Shown here in pieces: positions 7,821 to 64,000 of a stretch of 64,000 nt of DNA. Made by a program: the position numbers and the translations under genes. The stretch spans positions 62,001 through 126,000 of IMG/VR virus record IMGVR_UViG_3300020154_000003. One strand, written 5' to 3'. The notes under the pieces are model-generated. The model ran no database searches and had not been told where the DNA came from. It saw nothing but the letters and a program-made list of their open reading frames with translations. Position 1 is the first letter of the stretch. The number at the start of each line of letters is the position of its first letter.

Positions 7821-10800
7821 ATGGCAGCATCGGATAACATTATAGACCCAAATGAAATTATAACCTCTGACTCGTTTAATAAATTGGGGCTTAACGGTAT
7901 GCCAGATCATTCCAAAATGTATTTGTTCGTAGAATTAACCGCAAAAAGAAGAGGTGGCAGTATTTTAGTGACTGATGGAGTGGGATCATCTTCAAAAAGA
8001 ATATTGAAAGATGAAAATGATGCAATAAGTATCAATATGATGGGGTTCGATCAGAACACTAAAAATTACACTACAAGATGGAGCAAGAATTCTGATAATA
8101 ATGAAACAAATTTTGAAGGTTTTGGGATCACGGAAATAAATATCAACACAACCAGTAGTTATGTTCCAGTGGTTGATATTGAATTCGTTGACATTAGAGG
8201 TTCATCTTTATTTACTTTCGGTTCAAAATCCCCGTATTCAGTACTATTCAGCTTTCCACCGCCAGTATTTACCTTAACTGTTAAGGGTTATTACGGTAAG
8301 GCTTTAACCTATAATTTACATCTGGTACGCCAATCAAGTAGATTCGATGCTGCGTCAGGAAATTATTACATATCAGCCAATTTTGTTGCTCAAAAGTTTG
8401 CACCATTAACGGATGTCCTTTTCAAGTATATTGACGTTGTGCCTTTGATTAATGACACTTCTGGAGGTTCTGGTTTAAATGGCGTTGATTTTGATTTTAG
8501 CCAACCACCCAAAAATACTAGAGAACTTATCGTAAGAGCACAAAAACTATATGACGATCTTGAGAAGTTTAAAGCCAATTCTCAATTGGCAAATGATGCA
8601 GATAAATTCAGATCGGATTTTAACACCTCCCAATCACTTCTCTCGACCATAAACAATTTCAAAGCAAAGCTTGATCTTAACCTTCAAAATTTGAGTGATC
8701 TATATGTCATGGAAGTACCTAAGGATAATCCAAATGATGGTGGTGGTAATTTAAATAATGTTATCACTGAAAGATTTACTCCAATCACTTTACAGGAGTA
8801 TAATAATTTAATTAGGGTAGAGTCCCCTAATTTTCAGTCATCAAATATCAGTAGTAGATTATATATTTCTACAAAATTTGCAAATGCAGATACAACAACT
8901 GTGACTGGAACTACTGCATCGATCACAAAAAGAATAAAAAGTAACTTGCTCCAGTTGAAATTAACTATGTTAGGTGAGGCAAGTAGAGTTAACGCGAACA
9001 TTAAACCTAAAAGTAACGACATCAGAGACCCAAAAGAATTTATGGGGTCTGACGATAGATATTTTGGTATTGATATTACTGATTACTACATCAAAATCTT
9101 TCAAGATATTGAAACTAAAAGAAATCAGTTTCAAGCAAAACAAACTGAATTTAAAGATAAGGTTAATGATATTTCAGTAAGTGCATTAGGTAAAACTCCG
9201 ACAATTAAATTTATATTCGACATCCTATGTAATGATGTTGATAAGTTTTTTAATAAGCTTAAGGACGTAGATTACCTTTCCGAAATACATCACCAAAAAT
9301 ACTTTAGTCAAATCGTAACAAATAACGAATCCAAGAAAAATAAAATATCGCCTTTTCCATTAATTAAAAAGAAAACTGTTATCTCGAATTTGAATGATAG
9401 TACAACAGGTAGCATTGAGCGTGAAGAACGTGCTTATCCTCAAGAAGTGTTTAAGGATATTGAAACATTCCCTGAAGTACAGTTTGTTGAAAGCTTTATC
9501 ACTACGTTTTTGGATATTATTAAAAGCGATGAAATTCTTGACCTTAAAGAAGGAACTGACGAACAAGGTAATAATAAGTGGATACCTATCAACCCATTGG
9601 ACTCAGTTGTTAATGGTCGAATTAGTGCAATAACCCCGTATTTCGGTAAACTAAATCCAATACCTGAATTAATTACTGAGTTATTAACTAGATATTATGT
9701 GGTGACGCAATTTAGTTATGGTGAATTATTTTATCATAAGGATGGAAATATTATTACTGAATTTTTCGGTGTTGAAAGCAAACAAAATGATCTCATCTCA
9801 TTTTTAGCTAAAGCTGAGGCTGCTAATATCATAAATTCTATTGTTGATAGTAATCTTCTCAATGGACTTTCTGCACAAGCGACTCAGTGGAAATCAAATA
9901 TTCAAACTTTCTACGATTCTCTTTCTAATAACGTATCAACCTATAATACGATTCCAACTCATGGAACTGCGGGAGTTACATATTTAGAATTGAATGGCCA
10001 ACCAATTGTAAAGGATCGAACAAATTTTCTATATAAAGGATTTGAATTGTTGACTGGCGGTAAGCCAGACTTAAGGAATCCTTCTGACGATGGTAGTAAT
10101 ACAGGTGAGTTGAATGTTGTGGATAAATTTTTGGACAGATTCGCGAATAGTAGAGTTAGAAACTTTTTATTTGAAAATTTTGAATTTGAAGACTTCACTA
10201 AACAAAACATCATTTATGTTAAGGATGAGGCAAGCAGCGATAGTGGCGGGAATGATAGTGATTTTATAAAAAATGGTACAGTTCTCGACTCTGATTTATT
10301 CAGTTTCAATAGAAACGTAGATAAAACTATTTCAAACATTTATGCAGCAACATTAAGTAAAGCTGATAGCACCTTATTAACTATATTGAACGATCCTGAT
10401 ATTACAAACACAGTCAAAACTATGGTGTTTGTGTCAATGTTCGGTAGAACTCTCTCTTATTTTGATAAGGCAGTAAATAAGAAATTTGCATTCCCATCAG
10501 TAATCGAGGCTCCGAAATTTGCACATTTATACATGGGAGGTTTGGCATATTTCTACAAAGACCCAACAACCTTAATTAATGATGAAATTGACACATACAA
10601 TAATAAGTATGCAAGTTTCTTGCGTTTTGATAAGAATCTTGAAAGTGCAATACAAGTACAAAACATATCATCAATCGATGCTGAGGAATTGAAAACATAC
10701 TTCGAATCTTTTGCATCAGACACCACCTCAACTGGCTACATAACATTTGAAAACAGTGTAATTGCGTTGATCGAGGAAGTTCAAGCCCTTGGAATTAGCG

Positions 10801-12122
10801 ATACTGACGATAAATTTGATGAATATTTTAGAAGATTGACGGATGATGAACTTGATTCAGATAAAAATGAAAACGACTATAGCTTTCTTATAAATAAATT
10901 GAATGAGCAGTTATATGTTTTGAATTATACTCAAACAACATTTTATCCAGACACTACCGTTGATCCAGAATTCACAGCCTTGTCTTTATTGAACTTAAAC
11001 GCATCGTTTAAGTCTACCAATGACAAATATTTCAAAGAATTCTTCACTGAAGTAATTAAACTCATTGAAGAAAGAAATAAAAAATTGAAGGAAATTGAAC
11101 AAAGATTCCAACAAAGTATTGAAGATAAAGATATTAAAACCCAATGCTACTATTCATTTAAATCAATATCAGATAAGTGGGTTTTAGGATATGGTAAGGA
11201 AGGTATTATGGGTAATACAACACCTCTCATTGATGATTTTATTTTTGTTGATAGAGCCTTCAATGATATTGGTGATAAAGTTGTTATAGATTTTAGGCCA
11301 ATCATCGAGATGTCAAAAGATTTCGATGTGAGCGTTTTTACTGTAATGTCAAGATTATTATCGCTAAATGGTTTTGAATTTTTTCCAGTACAGAATTTTA
11401 TGAATTTCAAACAAGGGCAGAATCAGTGGGAAGATGCATTTAAAATTTCCGACTCTGCAAAAGTCGATGTCAGCACCAGTCCTAAATTCATATGTATGTA
11501 CGTTGGTGGCGCATCATCCCAATTGGATGATCCTTATGGTGATTTCGATGATGATGGAGTACAGAATTTGTCTGAGTTACCGGACTTCAAAGAAGGAAAC
11601 GTCTTTGGATTTAAAGTTGCATTTGCTAAACAAAATCAATCGTTGTTCACTAATATTGAACTAAACACTAATGAACATAAAGAGACGAATGAAAGCTTGG
11701 CAATACTGTCTGAAATCGCACAAGATCAAAGCGCATCCTCACCAGTACCTAAGGGTCAGAACTTGTTTTCAACTTTTGAACAAAGAAGTTATACGTGTAA
11801 AGTCGAGATGTTGGGCGATATAATGATTCAACCAACTCAGTATTTTTTATTAGAAAACGTACCGATGTTCAAAGGAGCGTATTTAATCCTACAAGTACAG
11901 CACAACATTGTCCCTAATTTTATGAAGACTAGTTTTGAGGGAGTAAGAATTAGAAAGGTTCCTCAACCATTTGTTCAGGAATTTGCAACTGCGGTGGGGG
12001 TTAAAGGAGGTGCTTCCGATTCTACGTTGGTTGGTGAGAATGACGTAAACAATAACCTTAACAACATACCAACTATAAATCCTATTACAACTGATCAAAC
12101 ATCCAGATTGATCAGTCCTTAA
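7821..12122 (+). CDS. large virion protein, baseplate hub-like C-terminus
   Basis: C-terminal VEMLGDIMIQPTQYF...GAYLILQVQHNI...TSFEGVR resembles hub/late-control-D ends; start placed at ATG 7821. Confidence 0.55.
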   Translation: MAASDNIIDPNEIITSDSFNKLGLNGMPDHSKMYLFVELTAKRRGGSILVTDGVGSSSKRILKDENDAISINMMGFDQNTKNYTTRWSKNSDNNETNFEGFGITEININTTSSYVPVVDIEFVDIRGSSLFTFGSKSPYSVLFSFPPPVFTLTVKGYYGKALTYNLHLVRQSSRFDAASGNYYISANFVAQKFAPLTDVLFKYIDVVPLINDTSGGSGLNGVDFDFSQPPKNTRELIVRAQKLYDDLEKFKANSQLANDADKFRSDFNTSQSLLSTINNFKAKLDLNLQNLSDLYVMEVPKDNPNDGGGNLNNVITERFTPITLQEYNNLIRVESPNFQSSNISSRLYISTKFANADTTTVTGTTASITKRIKSNLLQLKLTMLGEASRVNANIKPKSNDIRDPKEFMGSDDRYFGIDITDYYIKIFQDIETKRNQFQAKQTEFKDKVNDISVSALGKTPTIKFIFDILCNDVDKFFNKLKDVDYLSEIHHQKYFSQIVTNNESKKNKISPFPLIKKKTVISNLNDSTTGSIEREERAYPQEVFKDIETFPEVQFVESFITTFLDIIKSDEILDLKEGTDEQGNNKWIPINPLDSVVNGRISAITPYFGKLNPIPELITELLTRYYVVTQFSYGELFYHKDGNIITEFFGVESKQNDLISFLAKAEAANIINSIVDSNLLNGLSAQATQWKSNIQTFYDSLSNNVSTYNTIPTHGTAGVTYLELNGQPIVKDRTNFLYKGFELLTGGKPDLRNPSDDGSNTGELNVVDKFLDRFANSRVRNFLFENFEFEDFTKQNIIYVKDEASSDSGGNDSDFIKNGTVLDSDLFSFNRNVDKTISNIYAATLSKADSTLLTILNDPDITNTVKTMVFVSMFGRTLSYFDKAVNKKFAFPSVIEAPKFAHLYMGGLAYFYKDPTTLINDEIDTYNNKYASFLRFDKNLESAIQVQNISSIDAEELKTYFESFASDTTSTGYITFENSVIALIEEVQALGISDTDDKFDEYFRRLTDDELDSDKNENDYSFLINKLNEQLYVLNYTQTTFYPDTTVDPEFTALSLLNLNASFKSTNDKYFKEFFTEVIKLIEERNKKLKEIEQRFQQSIEDKDIKTQCYYSFKSISDKWVLGYGKEGIMGNTTPLIDDFIFVDRAFNDIGDKVVIDFRPIIEMSKDFDVSVFTVMSRLLSLNGFEFFPVQNFMNFKQGQNQWEDAFKISDSAKVDVSTSPKFICMYVGGASSQLDDPYGDFDDDGVQNLSELPDFKEGNVFGFKVAFAKQNQSLFTNIELNTNEHKETNESLAILSEIAQDQSASSPVPKGQNLFSTFEQRSYTCKVEMLGDIMIQPTQYFLLENVPMFKGAYLILQVQHNIVPNFMKTSFEGVRIRKVPQPFVQEFATAVGVKGGASDSTLVGENDVNNNLNNIPTINPITTDQTSRLISP

Positions 12123-12135
12123 AGTATTTATTAAC

Positions 12136-13578
12136 ATGGCATATAAACCGCTCACCAATAAAGGTAAAGAATTCATTAGAACTAGATGTACGTCTGCAGG
12201 CGATAGATTATCTGGAAAGCAGAACTATGCATTAGGCAGAAGTAATGTTCCTGCTGGAACCGTATTCACCTCAAACGCCTACAATGATGGTGACCCAAAA
12301 ACAACTGTCGATGATCGTGAAAAAATCACAACGAATGAGCAGTTAGCTGAAAACTTGATCACATGGTTCAATTATTATGCTGAAGAATATCTGCTTGATG
12401 CTAATATTATGGCTGCTCAATGTTATGTGGAAAGCAACTATAATTTATGGGCTTTTTCCTATGGTGGTAAAAGAGGGAGTAGTGCGATGGGTATAACTCA
12501 ATTTATTGATGTTTCCATCTACGACATAATATTCAAGAATTCATATTCGTTTGAACCTGAAATTGTACTTTTAGGACACAACTTAACTGGTGACACATCA
12601 GACATAAGAACGATAGTTCCATATTATAATAATCAAGCTGCTTCAATTATAAGCACTCCCACAACAAATGCTAGAGCGATTGCCAATAGGAAACAGTTGT
12701 TTCAAAATATTGTGGATAATCCTAAAGCAATGATTAAGGCTCAGTGTCATTTAATGCATAAGATTGGGGAGAGAAACAATAATTTAGCTGCATCTTCATT
12801 ATTTGCTTACAATAGAGCAGCTAGTTTGAGGTCTAAAACCTATAATGAAGCTATTGATAAGGCGGTTAAAAAGAAGATACGAATAGAGGAAGGTACTTCT
12901 TATGTTGATAAAATATTCAAACTTTTGAATGGGACATATGGAACCAGAACAGAGAGTAGCTTTGGTAATGGAATATATCAAGGCGAAGGATTTGGGTATG
13001 GTTTTCCGAATGAAATTGATGCGGTAGCTAATAGAAATTTATCCAACACTTTATTAGTTTCAGGAAATTTTGGATTAAATACAGTTCAGGAAAAGTTCAT
13101 ACAGTCATTGCATCCAGTAGCACAAGATAAATTTAGATTGTTTTTATCTACAATAGAAAAACAGACTCCATTCACGGTTTCTTTACAAAGTGCATATAGA
13201 TCATACGCACATCAGCAAAGATTAAAAAAAGAATATGCTGTAACCAAGCCATCTGTACCTGTTTCCTCTCCGGGAAATAGTTATCATAATTTTGGATTGG
13301 CACTGGATATTGTACTGGTTAATGGATACGTTACATACGGGCATGGTCAAACTAAAAAAGAATGGATTGCAACTGGAGTTCCTAAAATAGCTTCAGACCT
13401 TGGACTAGTATGGGGTGGAGATTTTAGTAATTATGATCCTGTACACTTCGATTTGAGCAACACTTACGCTTTGAATTCATTAAAGTCTGCAGCAACGGCA
13501 CAGTTTGGTACTGATCCTAACAAGGTTAACGGAAATCAAATAGCTAATTTACAACCATCTGAAGGAGGTTATTCTTAA
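12136..13578 (+). CDS. virion-associated lysin: SLT-like transglycosylase + M15 peptidase
   Basis: VESNYN, AMGITQF, AYN (SLT); SYHNFGLALD, WGGDF, DPVHF (M15). Confidence 0.85.
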   Translation: MAYKPLTNKGKEFIRTRCTSAGDRLSGKQNYALGRSNVPAGTVFTSNAYNDGDPKTTVDDREKITTNEQLAENLITWFNYYAEEYLLDANIMAAQCYVESNYNLWAFSYGGKRGSSAMGITQFIDVSIYDIIFKNSYSFEPEIVLLGHNLTGDTSDIRTIVPYYNNQAASIISTPTTNARAIANRKQLFQNIVDNPKAMIKAQCHLMHKIGERNNNLAASSLFAYNRAASLRSKTYNEAIDKAVKKKIRIEEGTSYVDKIFKLLNGTYGTRTESSFGNGIYQGEGFGYGFPNEIDAVANRNLSNTLLVSGNFGLNTVQEKFIQSLHPVAQDKFRLFLSTIEKQTPFTVSLQSAYRSYAHQQRLKKEYAVTKPSVPVSSPGNSYHNFGLALDIVLVNGYVTYGHGQTKKEWIATGVPKIASDLGLVWGGDFSNYDPVHFDLSNTYALNSLKSAATAQFGTDPNKVNGNQIANLQPSEGGYS

Positions 13579-14403: not shown

Positions 14404-16425
14404 TTAGCTGGACATTGAATTTATAATATCATCGTCTATATCCTTCAATTTTTCGTCCTCCAATTCGTTAGACTTAACCACATTTTCTACCTTATTTTCC
14501 TTATAAGCGAAGTTTTCTGGATTTGTCGCCTCATTGTTAAATGTACCATTACTGTATAATAGCTTATCAATTTCGGTGATCATAGTCCTTGCGGTCTTAT
14601 TTAACTGATCGTTTTTCTTGGCAAATTCATCCTCACTTTGCTTTGCAGCCGTGACGTTTTGTTTGCCCATCAAATCTTCTAATAATTCATCAAATGTTTT
14701 CTTTTCAGTAATAATGTTCTTTTGTGAACTTACTGATTCTTGAGTATTTCCCCCTGCTGGTGCGGCTTGACTTGCACTGCCTTGTGGCTCAGGTAAGGCA
14801 GCAGGAGTTTGCGGAGCGTTAGTTGCTCCACCTTCTGGTGGTGGATTGCTTTCAGGCTGTCCTTCACCTCCCTGTGGAGGTGGGCCACCTTGAGTCAATG
14901 CAGCATCAGGGTTTCCGTATTTCTGGTCAATGTCATCAAATACACCAGTCTTAGGGATAATAACGGCAGTATCTTGAAGTTCTTGACTAATCGCTCTTTC
15001 CATTCTCTGGTTTTTCAAATCTTCAACAATTTCTTTATCAGACCAGCCAAGGATATTTCTCTTAGCCCATGTATGTGAAGATGCTGCGATTCCTGATCCT
15101 TCGTTGCGAGTAATTTCAGTGTACAACTGAATTTTAGCAGTTAATGTTTCTGTCTTAAGCTTATCTGCTTGTGTTGAAGGATTGGTTAATGAAAGACTGA
15201 ATTCGTGTAAATCATTTTCATATCCCTTGAGGAACAAATGAATGATTGCCATTTTATTCAATTCTTGCAATAATGCTTGTTGTATTTTGTTGATTTTTTT
15301 AGCAAATCTAACATCCATCTGTGCAAGGTTTTTACCTTCACCTGCACTACCTGAGAAACCAAGGAAAGGTTTAGGGATTCCAAGACCACTAAATAAATTG
15401 TCACGCAAGTAAGCGATGTCAGCAATAGCGTCCAAGTTGGTTGCTCCGGGTAATGTTTCAATCACTGTGCTTTTGCCATCACGTACTGGTACAAATATAT
15501 CTTCGTCATTCCCTAAGATATTAAATCTGTAGTCGATTTGACCGTTGTTTTTATAAACTTGTTGTTGTTTCTTGAATTTAGTAGCAACTTTATATACGTA
15601 TGCTTCAATGTCTTTATCGTCAATGTTACCTACTTCTATTTTGAAAACTCTTTTTTCACCTGCTCTCAAAATACGATAAGTTAACATTGCATCTTCAGCC
15701 ATAACTAATTGTCTGAATACTCTTCTTATTTTATTAAGTACAGAAGAACCATACGGTAAGTGCTTGTCATCACCAAGTAGTCTGAAGTGAGCAATTTCAA
15801 ACATGTTGAATTCGTCACCAGTTACTTTATTTTTGAAAACAGTACGTGCTTTTCTGTCTTTAACTTCGTCTTTTCTTTCCATGTCGAAGTTAACTAGCTG
15901 ACGTACATAACGTATACCCTTTCCTTTTTCTCCTAGCGTGTACACAAAATTATCACCGTATTTGGCAAGATTTCTAGCCCAAAAAGGTAAATTAACATTT
16001 ACGTTTACAACACCGTAGAAAAAGTCTTCAAGAATAGTTTTAATTCTTTCCTTCTTTGAAAATATATTAAGCATTTTACCATTATCACCAATGGTAGTTG
16101 CTTCTTCTGAAATTAAATCGAGGGCTGATGCGATAAGTGGATAGTACTCCATACCTTCGTAGTCGACGTATGCAGGTATTCTATGACCTTCATACTGCAT
16201 GGCTTTTTGAAAACCGTGCTGTTGTACTTGGTAAAATTTATCAAAGATAAGTTCTCTCTGCTGAAGTTCTAATGCTGCTCGTTGAATATCTTCAGGAGTT
16301 TCAGCCTTAAGAATAATTTTCTTTTCTGGTTGTTGGTTCTGATTAGTTTGACCGCCAAACCCGAAACCATCCAAATTAAGAAATGAATTTATATCCTGAT
16401 ATATCGTTTTTTTGTTCTCAGCCAT
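14404..16425 (-). CDS. portal protein, T4 gp20 family
   Basis: QLVMAEDAMLTYRILRAGEKRVFKIEVGN, ETLPGATNL..IADI.YLR motifs. Confidence 0.95.
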   Translation of the reverse strand: MAENKKTIYQDINSFLNLDGFGFGGQTNQNQQPEKKIILKAETPEDIQRAALELQQRELIFDKFYQVQQHGFQKAMQYEGHRIPAYVDYEGMEYYPLIASALDLISEEATTIGDNGKMLNIFSKKERIKTILEDFFYGVVNVNVNLPFWARNLAKYGDNFVYTLGEKGKGIRYVRQLVNFDMERKDEVKDRKARTVFKNKVTGDEFNMFEIAHFRLLGDDKHLPYGSSVLNKIRRVFRQLVMAEDAMLTYRILRAGEKRVFKIEVGNIDDKDIEAYVYKVATKFKKQQQVYKNNGQIDYRFNILGNDEDIFVPVRDGKSTVIETLPGATNLDAIADIAYLRDNLFSGLGIPKPFLGFSGSAGEGKNLAQMDVRFAKKINKIQQALLQELNKMAIIHLFLKGYENDLHEFSLSLTNPSTQADKLKTETLTAKIQLYTEITRNEGSGIAASSHTWAKRNILGWSDKEIVEDLKNQRMERAISQELQDTAVIIPKTGVFDDIDQKYGNPDAALTQGGPPPQGGEGQPESNPPPEGGATNAPQTPAALPEPQGSASQAAPAGGNTQESVSSQKNIITEKKTFDELLEDLMGKQNVTAAKQSEDEFAKKNDQLNKTARTMITEIDKLLYSNGTFNNEATNPENFAYKENKVENVVKSNELEDEKLKDIDDDIINSMSS

Positions 16426-27258: not shown

Positions 27259-27334
27259 TGGGGCGATGAGTAGGAGTCGAACCTACATCTGCCCGCCTCA
27301 ATGCAGGCCGTGTTACCACAACACTTCCCTCGCC
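27259..27334 (-). tRNA. atypical tRNA (His-type 8-bp acceptor, 8-nt loop CATTGAGG)
   Basis: D and T arms intact, encoded CCA, anticodon ambiguous. Confidence 0.6.
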
Positions 27335-31895: not shown

Positions 31896-31967
31896 TGTAT
31901 GTTCGTCTAGGGGTCTAGGACACTCCCTTCATCGGGGGAAACATTGGTTCGAATCCAATACATACTC
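31896..31967 (+). tRNA. atypical tRNA (Glu-type D arm, irregular anticodon loop TTCATC[G])
   Basis: Acceptor GTATGT/ACATAC, T arm ATTGG-TTCGAAT-CCAAT. Confidence 0.55.
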
Positions 31968-33605: not shown

Positions 33606-33693
33606 CGCGGGATAGAGTAGTGGCCTAACTCGTCAGTCTCATAAGCTGAACCGTCTCATAAGGATGGCGTTGGTTCGAATCCAACTCCCGCTA
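33606..33693 (+). tRNA. tRNA-fMet-like(CAT) with extra CAT-bearing arm
   Basis: CGCGGG acceptor with C1 mismatch; GTCTCATAAG occurs twice. Confidence 0.8.
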
Positions 33694-33830
33694 CAAAATT
33701 TGTTAAACTTAAAGGTATGTATTATGGATGTCCAAAATGTGGTTCAACTCAAGTAAGTGTTCTAACAGAAAATTATTATATCTGTTTGGGTTGTAACAAT
33801 ACATGGACTGAAAATATAAAAAATAAACAT

Positions 33831-40441: not shown

Positions 40442-40529
40442 GCATCCGTGGCAGAATGGAGAATGATGCCCCACACTTTTAATGTGGACTGTCGTAAGAC
40501 TAACGTAGGTTCGATCCCTACCGGATGCA
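40442..40529 (+). tRNA. tRNA-Lys(TTT) with long variable arm
   Basis: CCACA-CTTTTAA-TGTGG plus GTC-GTAA-GAC arm. Confidence 0.8.
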
Positions 40530-40591
40530 CAAACGTAGATTTATGCGGTGAATAGAGACGCTATTCATCGCAGAATATGCGGAGATTAGTC

Positions 40592-45893: not shown

Positions 45894-45944
45894 TTCATGG
45901 GGTGCTGCCACTGGTAGCACCCTTCACTTCTTAAACCAACTCCA

Positions 45945-52059: not shown

Positions 52060-52143
52060 GCCGATGTCGCATAGTGGTTGATTGCACCTGACTTGTAATC
52101 AGGAAGATAATATCTCGCGGGGGTTCGAATCCCTCCATCGGCT
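52060..52143 (+). tRNA. tRNA-Thr(TGT) with long variable arm
   Basis: CCTGA-CTTGTAA-TCAGG. Confidence 0.85.
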
Positions 52144-52159
52144 CAAGAAATTTTAAAAC

Positions 52160-57486: not shown

Positions 57487-57576
57487 TCTTGGGTTGCTAT
57501 AGTGGCCGAATAGTCCAGACTGTTAATCTGGTGAACGCAAGTTCCATCGCAGGTTCGACTCCTGCCCCAAGAGCCA
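57487..57576 (+). tRNA. tRNA-Asn(GTT) with long variable arm
   Basis: CCAGA-CTGTTAA-TCTGG, GAAC-GCAA-GTTC arm, encoded CCA. Confidence 0.85.
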
Positions 57577-61539: not shown

Positions 61540-61612
61540 GTCTTAGTAGCACAATTGGCGGTGCAACGATCTCTAAAATCGGAGGATGCGGGTTCGATCC
61601 CCGCCTAAGGCA
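61540..61612 (+). tRNA. amber suppressor tRNA (CTA)
   Basis: GTCTTAG/CTAAGGC acceptor; CGAT-CTCTAAA-ATCG. Confidence 0.85.
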
Positions 61613-61613
61613 C

Positions 61614-61894: not shown

Positions 61895-62674
61895 ATGAAA
61901 GCAAAAAAAACTAAGAAAACTGCTAAAACCAGCACAAAAAGACCCGCCAAGAAGAAGCCTACCGCAAAAGCAAAAGCCTCATCAAAGACCAAAGCGAAAG
62001 CTAAGGTTAAATCCAAATTGGATTATACACACATAATCGCAGTACTGGACAAATCCAGTTCTATGCATTCAGTAGCGAATGCTGCCATGAAAGGTTTTAA
62101 TGAATTCCTGACATCACAAAAAGCCTTAAAAGGGAAAGCCACTATGGACGTGTTATTGTTCAGTAGTGCTGATAAAATCGACTATATCTCGCAGGGTGTT
62201 GACATCAGTGAGGTTGCTGAATTAACCTCTGAGACTTATCGTCCTCAGGGCACTACAGCATTATTCGATGCAATCGTGAAAGCCACTTCAACTTACAAAC
62301 TGAAGTATGATGAATTGAAGCCTTCAAAGAGACCCGATAAGATTTTGGTAATTGCTATTACTGATGGAGAAGAAAATAGCAGCACAGAATTTCCTATAAG
62401 TAAAGTTGGTGATGTCAAAGCATTGATCACAAAACGTAAGTCGGAAAACTGGCAGTTTATGTTCTTGTGCTCGACTGAAGATGCCGTGTTAACTGGCGAA
62501 TCTCTTGGAGTTTCAAGAGGTAACACAATGCAGTTTACCAATAGCGATCTTGGTAATCAAGCCATGTACTCTGCTGTGGCATCTGCTGCGACCATGTACA
62601 GATCGACTTCACTGAGAAGTAAGAGTTTTAGCAAGGTCAGCGATAATTTGCTGGCTGAGGATGATATTTCCTAA
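61895..62674 (+). CDS. vWA domain protein with Lys/Ala-rich N-tail
   Basis: MIDAS LDKSSSM, GTTALFDAI, ITDGEENSS. Confidence 0.88.
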   Translation: MKAKKTKKTAKTSTKRPAKKKPTAKAKASSKTKAKAKVKSKLDYTHIIAVLDKSSSMHSVANAAMKGFNEFLTSQKALKGKATMDVLLFSSADKIDYISQGVDISEVAELTSETYRPQGTTALFDAIVKATSTYKLKYDELKPSKRPDKILVIAITDGEENSSTEFPISKVGDVKALITKRKSENWQFMFLCSTEDAVLTGESLGVSRGNTMQFTNSDLGNQAMYSAVASAATMYRSTSLRSKSFSKVSDNLLAEDDIS

Positions 62675-62683
62675 ATTTAATTA

Positions 62684-62977
62684 ATGGGTGGTATGAATAA
62701 TACCATCCATTTTTTTATGAAACGAAAGAAAGAACCAGTACCAATATTTCGAGATTACGTAGTGTTCTATGAGGTTAAGAATGATAAAAACTCTACCAAA
62801 TGGGACATGTTATGGCGAGAAACAGGCGAAAAGGCAGGTGATGTAGAATTTTTTAAAGATAAATTCGACACTTATGTTTATAATGTTTTCCCACAATTTA
62901 AGCGTTTAAGCGGGGTTTGGGTTGATCTCAGGAAACTTATAAAAGAAAAATCTGGTCACGACATTGCAAAATTCTAA
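62684..62977 (+). CDS. hypothetical protein
   Basis: ORF; true start probably at a downstream Met. Confidence 0.5.
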   Translation: MGGMNNTIHFFMKRKKEPVPIFRDYVVFYEVKNDKNSTKWDMLWRETGEKAGDVEFFKDKFDTYVYNVFPQFKRLSGVWVDLRKLIKEKSGHDIAKF

Positions 62978-63022: not shown

Positions 63023-63403
63023 ATGAAAAAAGAACTGTAGATTTCCAATCCTAGCGATCTTAAACTGGTAACCATTACCAGACAAGACCTACCAATGGGC
63101 GCAATCATTGCCCAAACAGTACATTCAACAGCATCATTTGCCATCCAGTACCCTGACAAATTTCGTCATTGGGAACAAACATCAAACTACGTAGCGTGTC
63201 TAGCTGCAAAGGATGAGCAAGAACTACTCAAGTATTACGACCGATTAATAAAGGCAGGAGCCGATGTGGTATTATTCCGTGAACCCGACATGGATAACCA
63301 AGCAACATCCCTATGCTTTTACGGCACTCCTGAGTTTCGGAAAATTACAAGCAGTTTACCATTAATGTTCAAGCAGAAGAAGGAGGTGGCTATGGCAGCA
63401 TAA
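63023..63403 (+). CDS. peptidyl-tRNA hydrolase Pth2-like, with in-frame TAG at codon 6
   Basis: MKKEL*ISNPSDLKLVTITRQDLPMGAIIAQTVHS...FREPDMDNQATSL. Confidence 0.8.
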
Positions 63404-63411
63404 TTTCACAT

Positions 63412-63486
63412 CCTTTGGTAGCTTAAGCTGGTTAAAGCCCATGACTGATCCTCATGGAGATGGTTGTTCGAATCGGCCCCAAAGGA
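63412..63486 (+). tRNA. atypical tRNA (GAT anticodon, loop CTGATCC)
   Basis: CCTTTGG/CCAAAGG acceptor; CATGA/TCATG stem; C37. Confidence 0.7.
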
Positions 63487-63493
63487 CTTAAAA

Positions 63494-63573
63494 CCTCGTG
63501 TAGCTTAGTGGTCTAAAGCAGCATACTTATAATATGCCTATCGTCTTAAACGGTTCGAATCCTACCACGAGGA
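63494..63573 (+). tRNA. tRNA-Ile(TAT)-like
   Basis: GCATA-CTTATAA-TATGC; poorly paired T stem. Confidence 0.65.
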
Positions 63574-63585
63574 CTTTAAAAAAAT

Positions 63586-63658
63586 GAGAGTATGGCTCAG
63601 TGGTTAGAGCAAGGACTTCTAAACTCCTAGGTCGTGGGTTCGAATCCCACTACTCTCT
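63586..63658 (+). tRNA. amber suppressor tRNA (CTA)
   Basis: GAGAGTA/TACTCTC acceptor; AGGAC-TTCTAAA-CTCCT (C31:C39 mismatch). Confidence 0.75.
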
Positions 63659-63677
63659 CTCAATAAAATAAAAAGTT

Positions 63678-64000
63678 ATGAAAACAATTAGAGAAACAAG
63701 TCAACCAGTAATCGATGCTCTTTTGAAGCATGTCGATCTTTGTGATGATCATTAGATACTTGAACCTTCAGCAGGCTTCGGTAATCTTGCGGATGGAATC
63801 GTAAGAGCGTGTCCTGACATAAAAGTTGATTGTGTCGAATTGAATGAACGCAACGTACAAATTCTCAAGGAGAAAGGGCATAACGTAGTTGGTCGTGACT
63901 TCTTTCACTTCAAAACAGAAAAGAAGTACTGGTACATCATCGCAGCACCAAACTTCAAAGACAATATTGATGTCGAACACATCATGAAGATGTACACACA
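63678..64000 (+). CDS. SAM-dependent methyltransferase with in-frame TAG at codon 26 (runs off window)
   Basis: MKTIRETSQPVIDALLKHVDLCDDH*ILEPSAGFGNLA...VDCVELN...GRDFF...IIAAPNF. Confidence 0.75.

Follow-up and report, generated by a model that had tools for sequence, protein, structure and literature searches.

Amber Stops Near the Starts of Two Jumbo-Phage Genes Beside a Suppressor tRNA Gene: A Likely Suppressor-Gated Module

Introduction

Recoding by suppressor tRNAs is established in crAss-like, Lak and other gut phages (Ivanova 2014; Borges et al. 2021/2022; Peters et al. 2022, PMC9523058), where numerous genes for structure and lysis are affected and the recoding shows up as an increase in coding density. 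The Borges preprint (bioRxiv 10.1101/2021.08.26.457843) described only TAG-to-Gln and TGA-to-Trp reassignments in phages whose code is unlike that of the host, and a 2026 jumbo-phage survey reported TAA recoding at the genome scale. The Xanthomonas phage XacN1 (PMC5852040) uses the standard code and possesses two tRNA(CUA) genes, for which its authors found no targets. The gene for a PTH2-type peptidyl-tRNA hydrolase was noted in a comparative jumbo-phage study, without mention of a stop or of a suppressor.

The locus described here resembles the code-15 gut phages in three respects: a phage-encoded tRNA(CUA), in-frame TAG codons that align with Gln, and a proposed translational switch in a standard-code host. 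It differs from them in extent. Tens to hundreds of genes are recoded in those phages, whereas here two genes in 83 kb are affected, both beside the tRNA; the structural and lysis genes are untouched, TAG remains a terminator, and an ochre version (TAA with a tRNA-UUA) exists in one relative. The likeness to XacN1 lies in the jumbo phage with a near-complete tRNA set, the two tRNA(CUA) genes and the peptidyl-tRNA hydrolase gene. The search for targets in XacN1 read through annotated 3' amber stops; the targets proposed here are situated near 5' ends and are invisible to such a test. No description of a stop-gated PTH2 or of this methyltransferase was found in the searchable literature.

Results

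The Window and Its Phage

The window, the whole stretch of DNA analysed, is 64,000 nucleotides long and corresponds to positions 62001–126000 of the IMG/VR record IMGVR_UViG_3300020154_000003 (Ga0196965_1000004, 366,038 bp), from a soil metagenome. Genes for a major head protein, a portal protein, the large terminase (TerL) and an endolysin-domain protein are all present within it, and it is therefore part of a jumbo phage. ARAGORN counted 52 tRNA genes in the window. No close cultured or deposited relative was found: a DNA search of the last 2.2 kb of the window against 50,697 phage records returned short tRNA matches only.

An Amber Codon Just Before Motif I of a Methyltransferase Gene

A gene for a SAM-dependent methyltransferase (MT) starts with the ATG at position 63678 of the plus strand. 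The window holds 107 of its 175 codons (63678–64000), and the TGA end lies 311 nt beyond the window in the source contig. Codon 26 is an in-frame TAG (63753–63755, plus strand) at the first residue of strand beta-1. It is followed by ATA (Ile) and then by LEPSAGFG, the Ile codon opening motif I, ILEPSAGFG, the SAM-binding loop (63756–63782, plus strand); its L, E, P, S, A, G and G did not vary among 36 aligned homologues. A first, sequence-only reading of the window had placed this TAG directly before motif I in a frame open to the window end, which held. It had also considered that further frameshifts or TAA/TGA stops in the gene would refute its interpretation; none was found in the full 175 codons, and the contig read past the window end showed no second interruption of the frame.

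The TAG at codon 26 is not an assembly artefact, since it recurs in a separately made Logan assembly (L003), in another contig from the same metagenome (L105) and in diverged relatives obtained from different runs (L004/L005, whose proteins are about 91% identical according to the tree). It was found again in L006, a 234 kb phage with no more than 69% identity to the query piece in its MT protein. Downstream of the stop the frame was intact in every relative, and in strain variants from four other soil runs the differences in this part of the gene fell almost only on third codon positions. With intact downstream frames and third-position differences, the TAG is conserved far beyond chance. Gene callers truncate the MT gene of the window. 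Many database entries of the MT family are likewise N-terminally truncated calls, beginning just after one of the stop positions, and where the DNA was retrieved the cause was an in-frame TAG.

A PTH2 Gene With a Stop in Its First Codons

The MT gene is preceded by a second interrupted gene of 126 codons (63023–63403, plus strand), ending 275 nt before the MT ATG. We assign it to the PTH2-type peptidyl-tRNA hydrolases by its match to Pfam PF01981 (E-value of 2.3e-7, 31.4 bits for a cut-off of 23, profile positions 1–81 of 115), which starts 7 residues past the TAG; its catalytic activity is inferred from sequence alone. The TAG is codon 6 (M-K-K-E-L-TAG-I; 63038–63040, plus strand) and is followed by ATT. 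No ATG, GTG or TTG exists between it and the conserved first strand of the protein.

In all 28 loci examined, the PTH2 gene had an in-frame stop at a distance of 1–8 codons from its ATG, and an Ile or Val codon came next. These include LR745206 and LR756504 (L135 and L136), two of the six matching huge-phage genomes (462–735 kb). In the cultured Tenacibaculum phage pT24 (L133, LC168164, about 194.1 kb), PTH2 starts with ATG AAA TAG ATA, a tRNA-Sup gene lies 2.6 kb upstream, and the annotated CDS starts too far downstream. In gp154 of mycobacteriophage Bxz1 (L134), the start is ATG TAG GTG and a tRNA(CUA) gene is located 300 nt downstream; this case is ambiguous, as the annotated PTH2 start is the GTG directly after the TAG. 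The Bxz1 tRNA(CUA) (L134 2181–2253) was 76–78% identical to suppressors of the jumbo-phage clade with the MT stop at codon 17 (L091 9239–9311; L118 117). This may hint at a joint spread of the tRNA and PTH2 between phage lineages that differ widely.

The lambda bar minigene reads AUG-AUA-stop, and the Pth of Escherichia coli is tied to minigenes and peptidyl-tRNA drop-off. The PTH2 start resembles such a minigene of one to eight codons ending in a stop, with a tRNA-Ile(UAU) gene adjacent. Unlike bar, this mini-ORF runs on in frame into the hydrolase itself and has a cognate suppressor alongside; a link with drop-off is conjecture.

tRNA Genes Around the Two Interrupted Genes

Three tRNA genes on the plus strand separate PTH2 from MT: a tRNA-Ile (GAU) at 63412–63487 (ARAGORN, Rfam), a tRNA-Ile (UAU), which reads AUA and has an atypical variable/T region, at 63494–63574 (ARAGORN; Rfam 45.6 bits), and a tRNA with the anticodon CUA at 63586–63659 (ARAGORN; Rfam tRNA 67.1 bits, the best of the four in the stretch). 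The last one ends 19 nt upstream of the MT ATG, on the same strand, and had not been mentioned in the sequence-only reading. Another suppressor-type tRNA(CUA), the first of the two in the window, is located at 61540–61613 (plus strand; ARAGORN; Rfam tRNA 57.6 bits, full length), with U33, A37 and A38. Both are canonical cloverleaves with GG in the D loop, TTCGA in the T loop, U33 and A37. A window tRNA(CUA) is 86% identical over 56 nt to a tRNA-Sup of XacN1.

The suppressor tRNAs of the different loci are diverse (57–99% mutually identical). The CUA copies of the window are closest to the phage's own tRNA-Gly and tRNA-Arg/Lys. The amino acid with which they are charged cannot be read from such diverse tRNA sequences.

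Decoding of UAG as pyrrolysine was considered separately. Neither tRNA(CUA) has the tRNA-Pyl architecture, with its atypical D and T loops and short variable loop, and the "Pyl" label given by ARAGORN reflects the anticodon only; this assessment covers the tRNAs and not a genome-wide search for pylS or pylBCD.

Some other features of the tRNA genes were recorded. In pT24 and L004, as in the window, genes for tRNA-Ile adjoin the suppressor; each of the two TAGs of the window precedes an Ile codon. ARAGORN reported two tRNA-like genes with a two-base "anticodon" and a short anticodon loop at 27259–27333 (minus strand) and 31896–31967 (plus strand), which may be pseudo-tRNAs or unusual decoders. 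The tRNA-Met, Lys, Thr and Asn genes at 33606–33694, 40442–40530, 52060–52144 and 57487–57576 are 85–90 nt long, overlong for their isotypes, and possibly contain introns or insertions.

Stops and Anticodons in Related Loci

Searches of IMG/VR and of JGI metagenomes with the C-terminal part of MT yielded about 40 loci. An earlier IMG/VR scan with the full-length MT alignment had been swamped by a more distant family with the NPPF motif, and the C-terminal alignment was used instead; the metagenome scan was based on a narrower MT alignment. The members of the distant NPPF family have an N-terminal extension, belong to phages of about 30–60 kb and are all uninterrupted.

Across the approximately 40 loci, the MT homologue showed one in-frame stop or none, never two, and one-stop genes were present in more than 20 distinct related jumbo-phage loci. 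The stop was at codon 10 in L007 and L106, at codon 17 in 15 distinct nucleotide sequences, at codon 26 in the group of the window and at codon 132 in L099 and L107/L108; in L098 it was a TAA at codon 130. Among the codon-17 sequences, the stretch of 16 codons preceding the TAG had 6, 3 and 9 variable sites at codon positions 1, 2 and 3, respectively, and all 48 sites of the 48 nt upstream of the ATG were variable. The TAG itself was invariant and the next codon varied (GTG, GTT, ATT, ATG). Such constraint before a fixed TAG indicates that both flanks of the stop are translated in one frame.

In a maximum-likelihood tree of 111 MT homologues, all of the stop-bearing genes fell into one clade of 49. 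Inside each subclade the stop alternated only with Gln (MQILEPSAG, FMQVADI, S(H/K)QVI and GDTQVQ), and the nearest uninterrupted relatives had Q at all four TAG columns. The homologue alignment that had been suggested at the outset for identifying the inserted residue thus aligned the TAG columns with Gln. This is indirect evidence on the residue, as these positions tolerate change and no mutation is easier than CAG to TAG; insertion of Gln is likely and remains an inference. The observation that an Ile codon follows both TAGs of the window held, the general rule being a purine at +4: the base after the stop was a purine in every case (Ile, Val, Met or Arg codons). A purine directly after the stop reportedly favours suppression (Bossi 1983).

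A tRNA(CUA) gene was located 16–900 nt upstream of MT, on the same strand, in nearly every TAG-bearing locus. The exceptions were L007, with the nearest copy about 3 kb upstream, L107/L108, with none detected, and the remaining ones, in which the contig is cut upstream. In six loci (L089, L090, L095, L097, L101 and L102), MT was uninterrupted and there was no suppressor within 10 kb. In L096, a suppressor was present, MT was uninterrupted and PTH2 had a TAG. The strongest single observation for a link between tRNA and stop came from L098 (IMGVR_UViG_3300022843_000009), where the neighbouring suppressor is a tRNA(UUA) and a TAA is present both in PTH2 (codon 9) and in MT (codon 130); the parts of this module lie at 8438–8755, 9854–10366 and 11739–11811. 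As a separate observation, TAG is an unusually common terminator in L098 (11 of 34 ORFs).

Fold and Possible Substrate of the Methyltransferase

The closest uninterrupted MT homologue, modelled with a 36-member alignment, gave a bare Rossmann methyltransferase with a pLDDT of 91. The pre-stop residues formed the N-terminal helix of the fold with a pLDDT above 95, and a product restarted after the TAG would therefore lack this helix. The best fold matches of this model were the catalytic domains of M.TaqI, CamA and a type I HsdM (TM 0.74–0.77 by query; 0.76 for M.TaqI). These were followed by tRNA m6A37, rRNA m2G and release-factor glutamine methyltransferases (TM 0.60–0.67), and the fold search does not separate DNA, tRNA, rRNA and release-factor methyltransferases. 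The Pfam N6_Mtase profile matched MT with an E-value of 1.9e-4, just above the cut-off, and the MT sequence had no match among PDB chains.

Of the features of the gamma-class N6-adenine methyltransferases, the Rossmann fold, motif I and the N-terminal motif X helix were met, and motif IV, (N/D)PP(Y/F/W), was not. At the position where amino-methyltransferases have (N/D)PP(F/Y), MT has AAPNF (residues 89–93; 63942–63956, plus strand). The family motif is (A/G/C)(A/C/S)P(N/T/P)(F/Y), never N/D-PP-F/Y, and the more distant relatives in smaller phages keep NPPF. MT shares with M.TaqI, CamA and HsdM (gamma class, Pfam N6_Mtase) an N-terminal helix before motif I and the same motif order. It differs from them by its 175 residues, by an AAPNF without N/D, by a near-constant pairing with a small cupin-fold protein and by the absence of a target-recognition domain, the protein ending after the catalytic domain. 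AAPNF had been singled out at the first inspection with the suggestion that the substrate may not be DNA adenine; the motif was confirmed, and the suggestion is reasonable given the family motif and the missing target-recognition domain, although it is inferred from sequence alone. The substrate is undecided; one may guess with some reason at a nucleic acid of the translation machinery, but only guess.

Gene Neighbourhood

A conserved 148-aa cupin-fold gene follows MT in nearly every locus, interrupted or not, often with overlapping stop and start. In the window's phage it lies just past the window end (L002 12301–12747), its start overlapped by MT. It was better conserved than MT in several clades. 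PTH2 adjoins MT in most loci, and a Thg1-like gene is present about 7 kb downstream in the window's phage.

Other genes were observed near the module. Thg1-like, PRPP synthetase-like, NAMPT (NAD salvage) and QueC-like genes lie downstream of it in L137 (8823–16494; record about 133–141 kb). Near the module of L007, a 285 kb phage, there are genes for a GGQ release-factor-like protein, a CCA-adding enzyme and a HisRS-like protein (2293–2847, 12146–13276, 15206–15832); the GGQ protein has 184 aa and is ArfB-like, its codon-recognition part being largely absent. An IS605-type pair (Y1 transposase and OrfB/TnpB, Cas12f-like; L006 6157–7825) is situated about 2 kb upstream of the module in the 234 kb phage.

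A strong terminator-like hairpin, with a 12 bp stem followed by a T run, was observed in the window at 62683–62711 (plus strand), directly after a gene for a 259-aa VWA-domain protein. It possibly marks the start of a PTH2-tRNA-MT transcription unit. No terminator-like hairpin was found between the tRNAs and the two interrupted genes. Matches to sigma-70 promoters were no commoner than in shuffled sequence.

Standard Code in the Rest of the Phage

Reading TAG as sense lengthened no long gene in the window. All eleven genes of more than 480 codons were intact under the standard code, those for the head, portal, terminase and endolysin-domain proteins among them. The 56 ORFs of at least 100 aa in the window ended with TAA (42), TGA (10) or TAG (4), and one of these TAGs lies immediately against a tRNA gene. 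Not one TAG occurred among the roughly 15,000 codons, 512 of them for Gln, that make up the other long ORFs, and no further supported in-frame TAG was found in the 62 kb upstream or the 21 kb downstream of MT. A screen for further ATG...TAG starts in the window and the next 21 kb gave one candidate, at position 45894, at chance level. An all-against-all screen of all the fetched loci for supported in-frame TAGs was filtered to at most 75% identity, the unfiltered version giving off-frame matches between near-identical loci; only MT and PTH2 stood out.

The sequence-only reading had taken the two genes for part of an island in which TAG is sense and had proposed to translate the following DNA accordingly. 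This part failed: neither the next 21 kb nor the structural and lysis genes showed an in-frame TAG. It is very likely that the recoding is not genome-wide, with two affected genes in the 83 kb seen; about 283 of the 366 kb were not covered.

Discussion

Proposed Mechanism

A single conserved stop under selection, located in a translated frame, with an adjacent cognate tRNA and a stop type that co-varies with the anticodon, is shown by the present data. We consider it likely that the TAGs of MT and PTH2 are programmed stops read by the suppressor tRNA, which gate the two genes within a conserved module made of the tRNA, PTH2 and the MT-cupin pair. Read-through, Gln insertion, co-transcription and a regulatory, dosage-coupling purpose are inferences, without evidence at the protein or ribosome level. 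Co-transcription of the tRNAs with both genes is inferred only from strand, spacing and the lack of an intervening terminator-like hairpin.

In this model, the phage tRNA(CUA), probably on the same transcript, would read the UAG at codon 26 of MT. Termination there by the host RF1 would release a useless peptide of 25 residues, and acceptance of the suppressor would give the complete enzyme. MT output would in this way depend on how much suppressor tRNA is present and how far it is charged. The downstream cupin gene would probably be gated too, via the overlapping stop and start, and PTH2, on the other side of the tRNA cluster, would be gated likewise at codon 6.

The purpose of such a gate can only be suggested. 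It may delay MT and PTH2 or scale them to the level of suppression, with for instance more peptidyl-tRNA hydrolase being made as read-through and stalling rise. It may also constitute a feedback loop, if MT acts on tRNA or on termination factors, or control downstream genes by polarity. A bolder reading, no more than possible, takes the tRNA together with PTH2 and the MT-cupin pair as a self-contained circuit for sensing translation, mobile between very different large and jumbo phages with hosts from Bacteroidota to Mycobacterium. The main or only targets of the tRNA would then be its neighbours, the mini-ORF-like start of PTH2 would measure the competition between release factor, drop-off and suppression, and MT would act on tRNA, release factor or ribosome, closing a feedback on stop decoding.

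Some observations stand against the gate. Some phage genes still end with TAG, and a strong suppressor would read through them. In addition, the toggling between Q and TAG and the case of L096 show that the MT gate is dispensable in some lineages, where it is perhaps tolerated and not selected.

Alternative Explanations

The alternative that survives best, which we nevertheless consider unlikely, is a sparse neutral recoding, in which the suppressor lets CAG drift to TAG in genes that are non-essential or needed late, without any regulatory role. In its favour, TAG alternates with Gln inside subclades, its position differs between clades, L096 has a suppressor and an uninterrupted MT, and the Gln columns could reflect only the easy CAG-to-TAG path at tolerant sites. 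Against it, a gene has one stop and never two, mostly within the first 26 codons; the TAG is invariant across the 15 distinct codon-17 sequences; and the other long ORFs have no TAG despite their 512 Gln codons. Drift is also hard to square with a PTH2 stop shared by all 28 loci, whose phages are very different, and with the joint switch of both genes to TAA in L098.

It is very unlikely that the locus is the edge of a genome-wide TAG-to-Gln (code 15) block in late genes, as in crAss-like and Lak phages. The phage tRNA(CUA) and the alignment of TAG with Gln in homologues would fit, and recoding in code-15 phages is itself limited to a part of their genes (Borges et al., bioRxiv 10.1101/2021.08.26.457843). 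Against this stand the absence of any other supported in-frame TAG over the 62 kb upstream and 21 kb downstream, the standard reading of the head, portal, TerL and endolysin-domain genes, and the continued use of TAG as a terminator.

Also very improbable is a leader peptide ending at the TAG, with translation restarting after it to give a shortened enzyme and the suppressor being irrelevant. The codon after the TAG is GTG or ATG in some relatives, and the annotated PTH2 start of Bxz1 is the GTG directly after ATG-TAG. In the window, however, ATA and ATT follow the TAGs, and MT offers no canonical start until 28 codons later, beyond motif I. Amino-acid constraint acts on the codons before the stop, and the stops at codons 130–132 (L098, L099, L107) cannot be bypassed by restarting.

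An ordinary pseudogene arising from a nonsense mutation, as a single premature stop near the 5' end and a gene truncated by the callers might suggest, is all but excluded by the lack of further lesions, the conservation of the stop down to 69% identity, the downstream variation at third codon positions and the matched suppressor next door. The initial argument that two neighbouring interrupted genes speak against pseudogenisation held, supported by the conserved stop, coding-type substitutions on both flanks, the adjacent tRNA(CUA) and the switch to TAA with tRNA(UUA). Our preferred reading remains that of suppressor-gated stops.

Significance

The locus flags a systematic mis-annotation of PTH2 and of the MT family in phage genomes, the callers silently truncating both. 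It is directly testable: the cultured phages pT24 and, ambiguously, Bxz1 show the stop after an upstream PTH2 ATG. The tRNAs could perhaps be useful as natural suppressor parts. Suppression would serve here to control particular genes locally and would leave the code unchanged, and a natural ochre version is included. Suppressor tRNAs with untraced targets are common in large standard-code phages, and the locus suggests where the answer may lie, in stops at the 5' ends of genes beside the tRNA. The module likely represents the first clear targets for these "orphan" suppressor tRNAs of standard-code phages.
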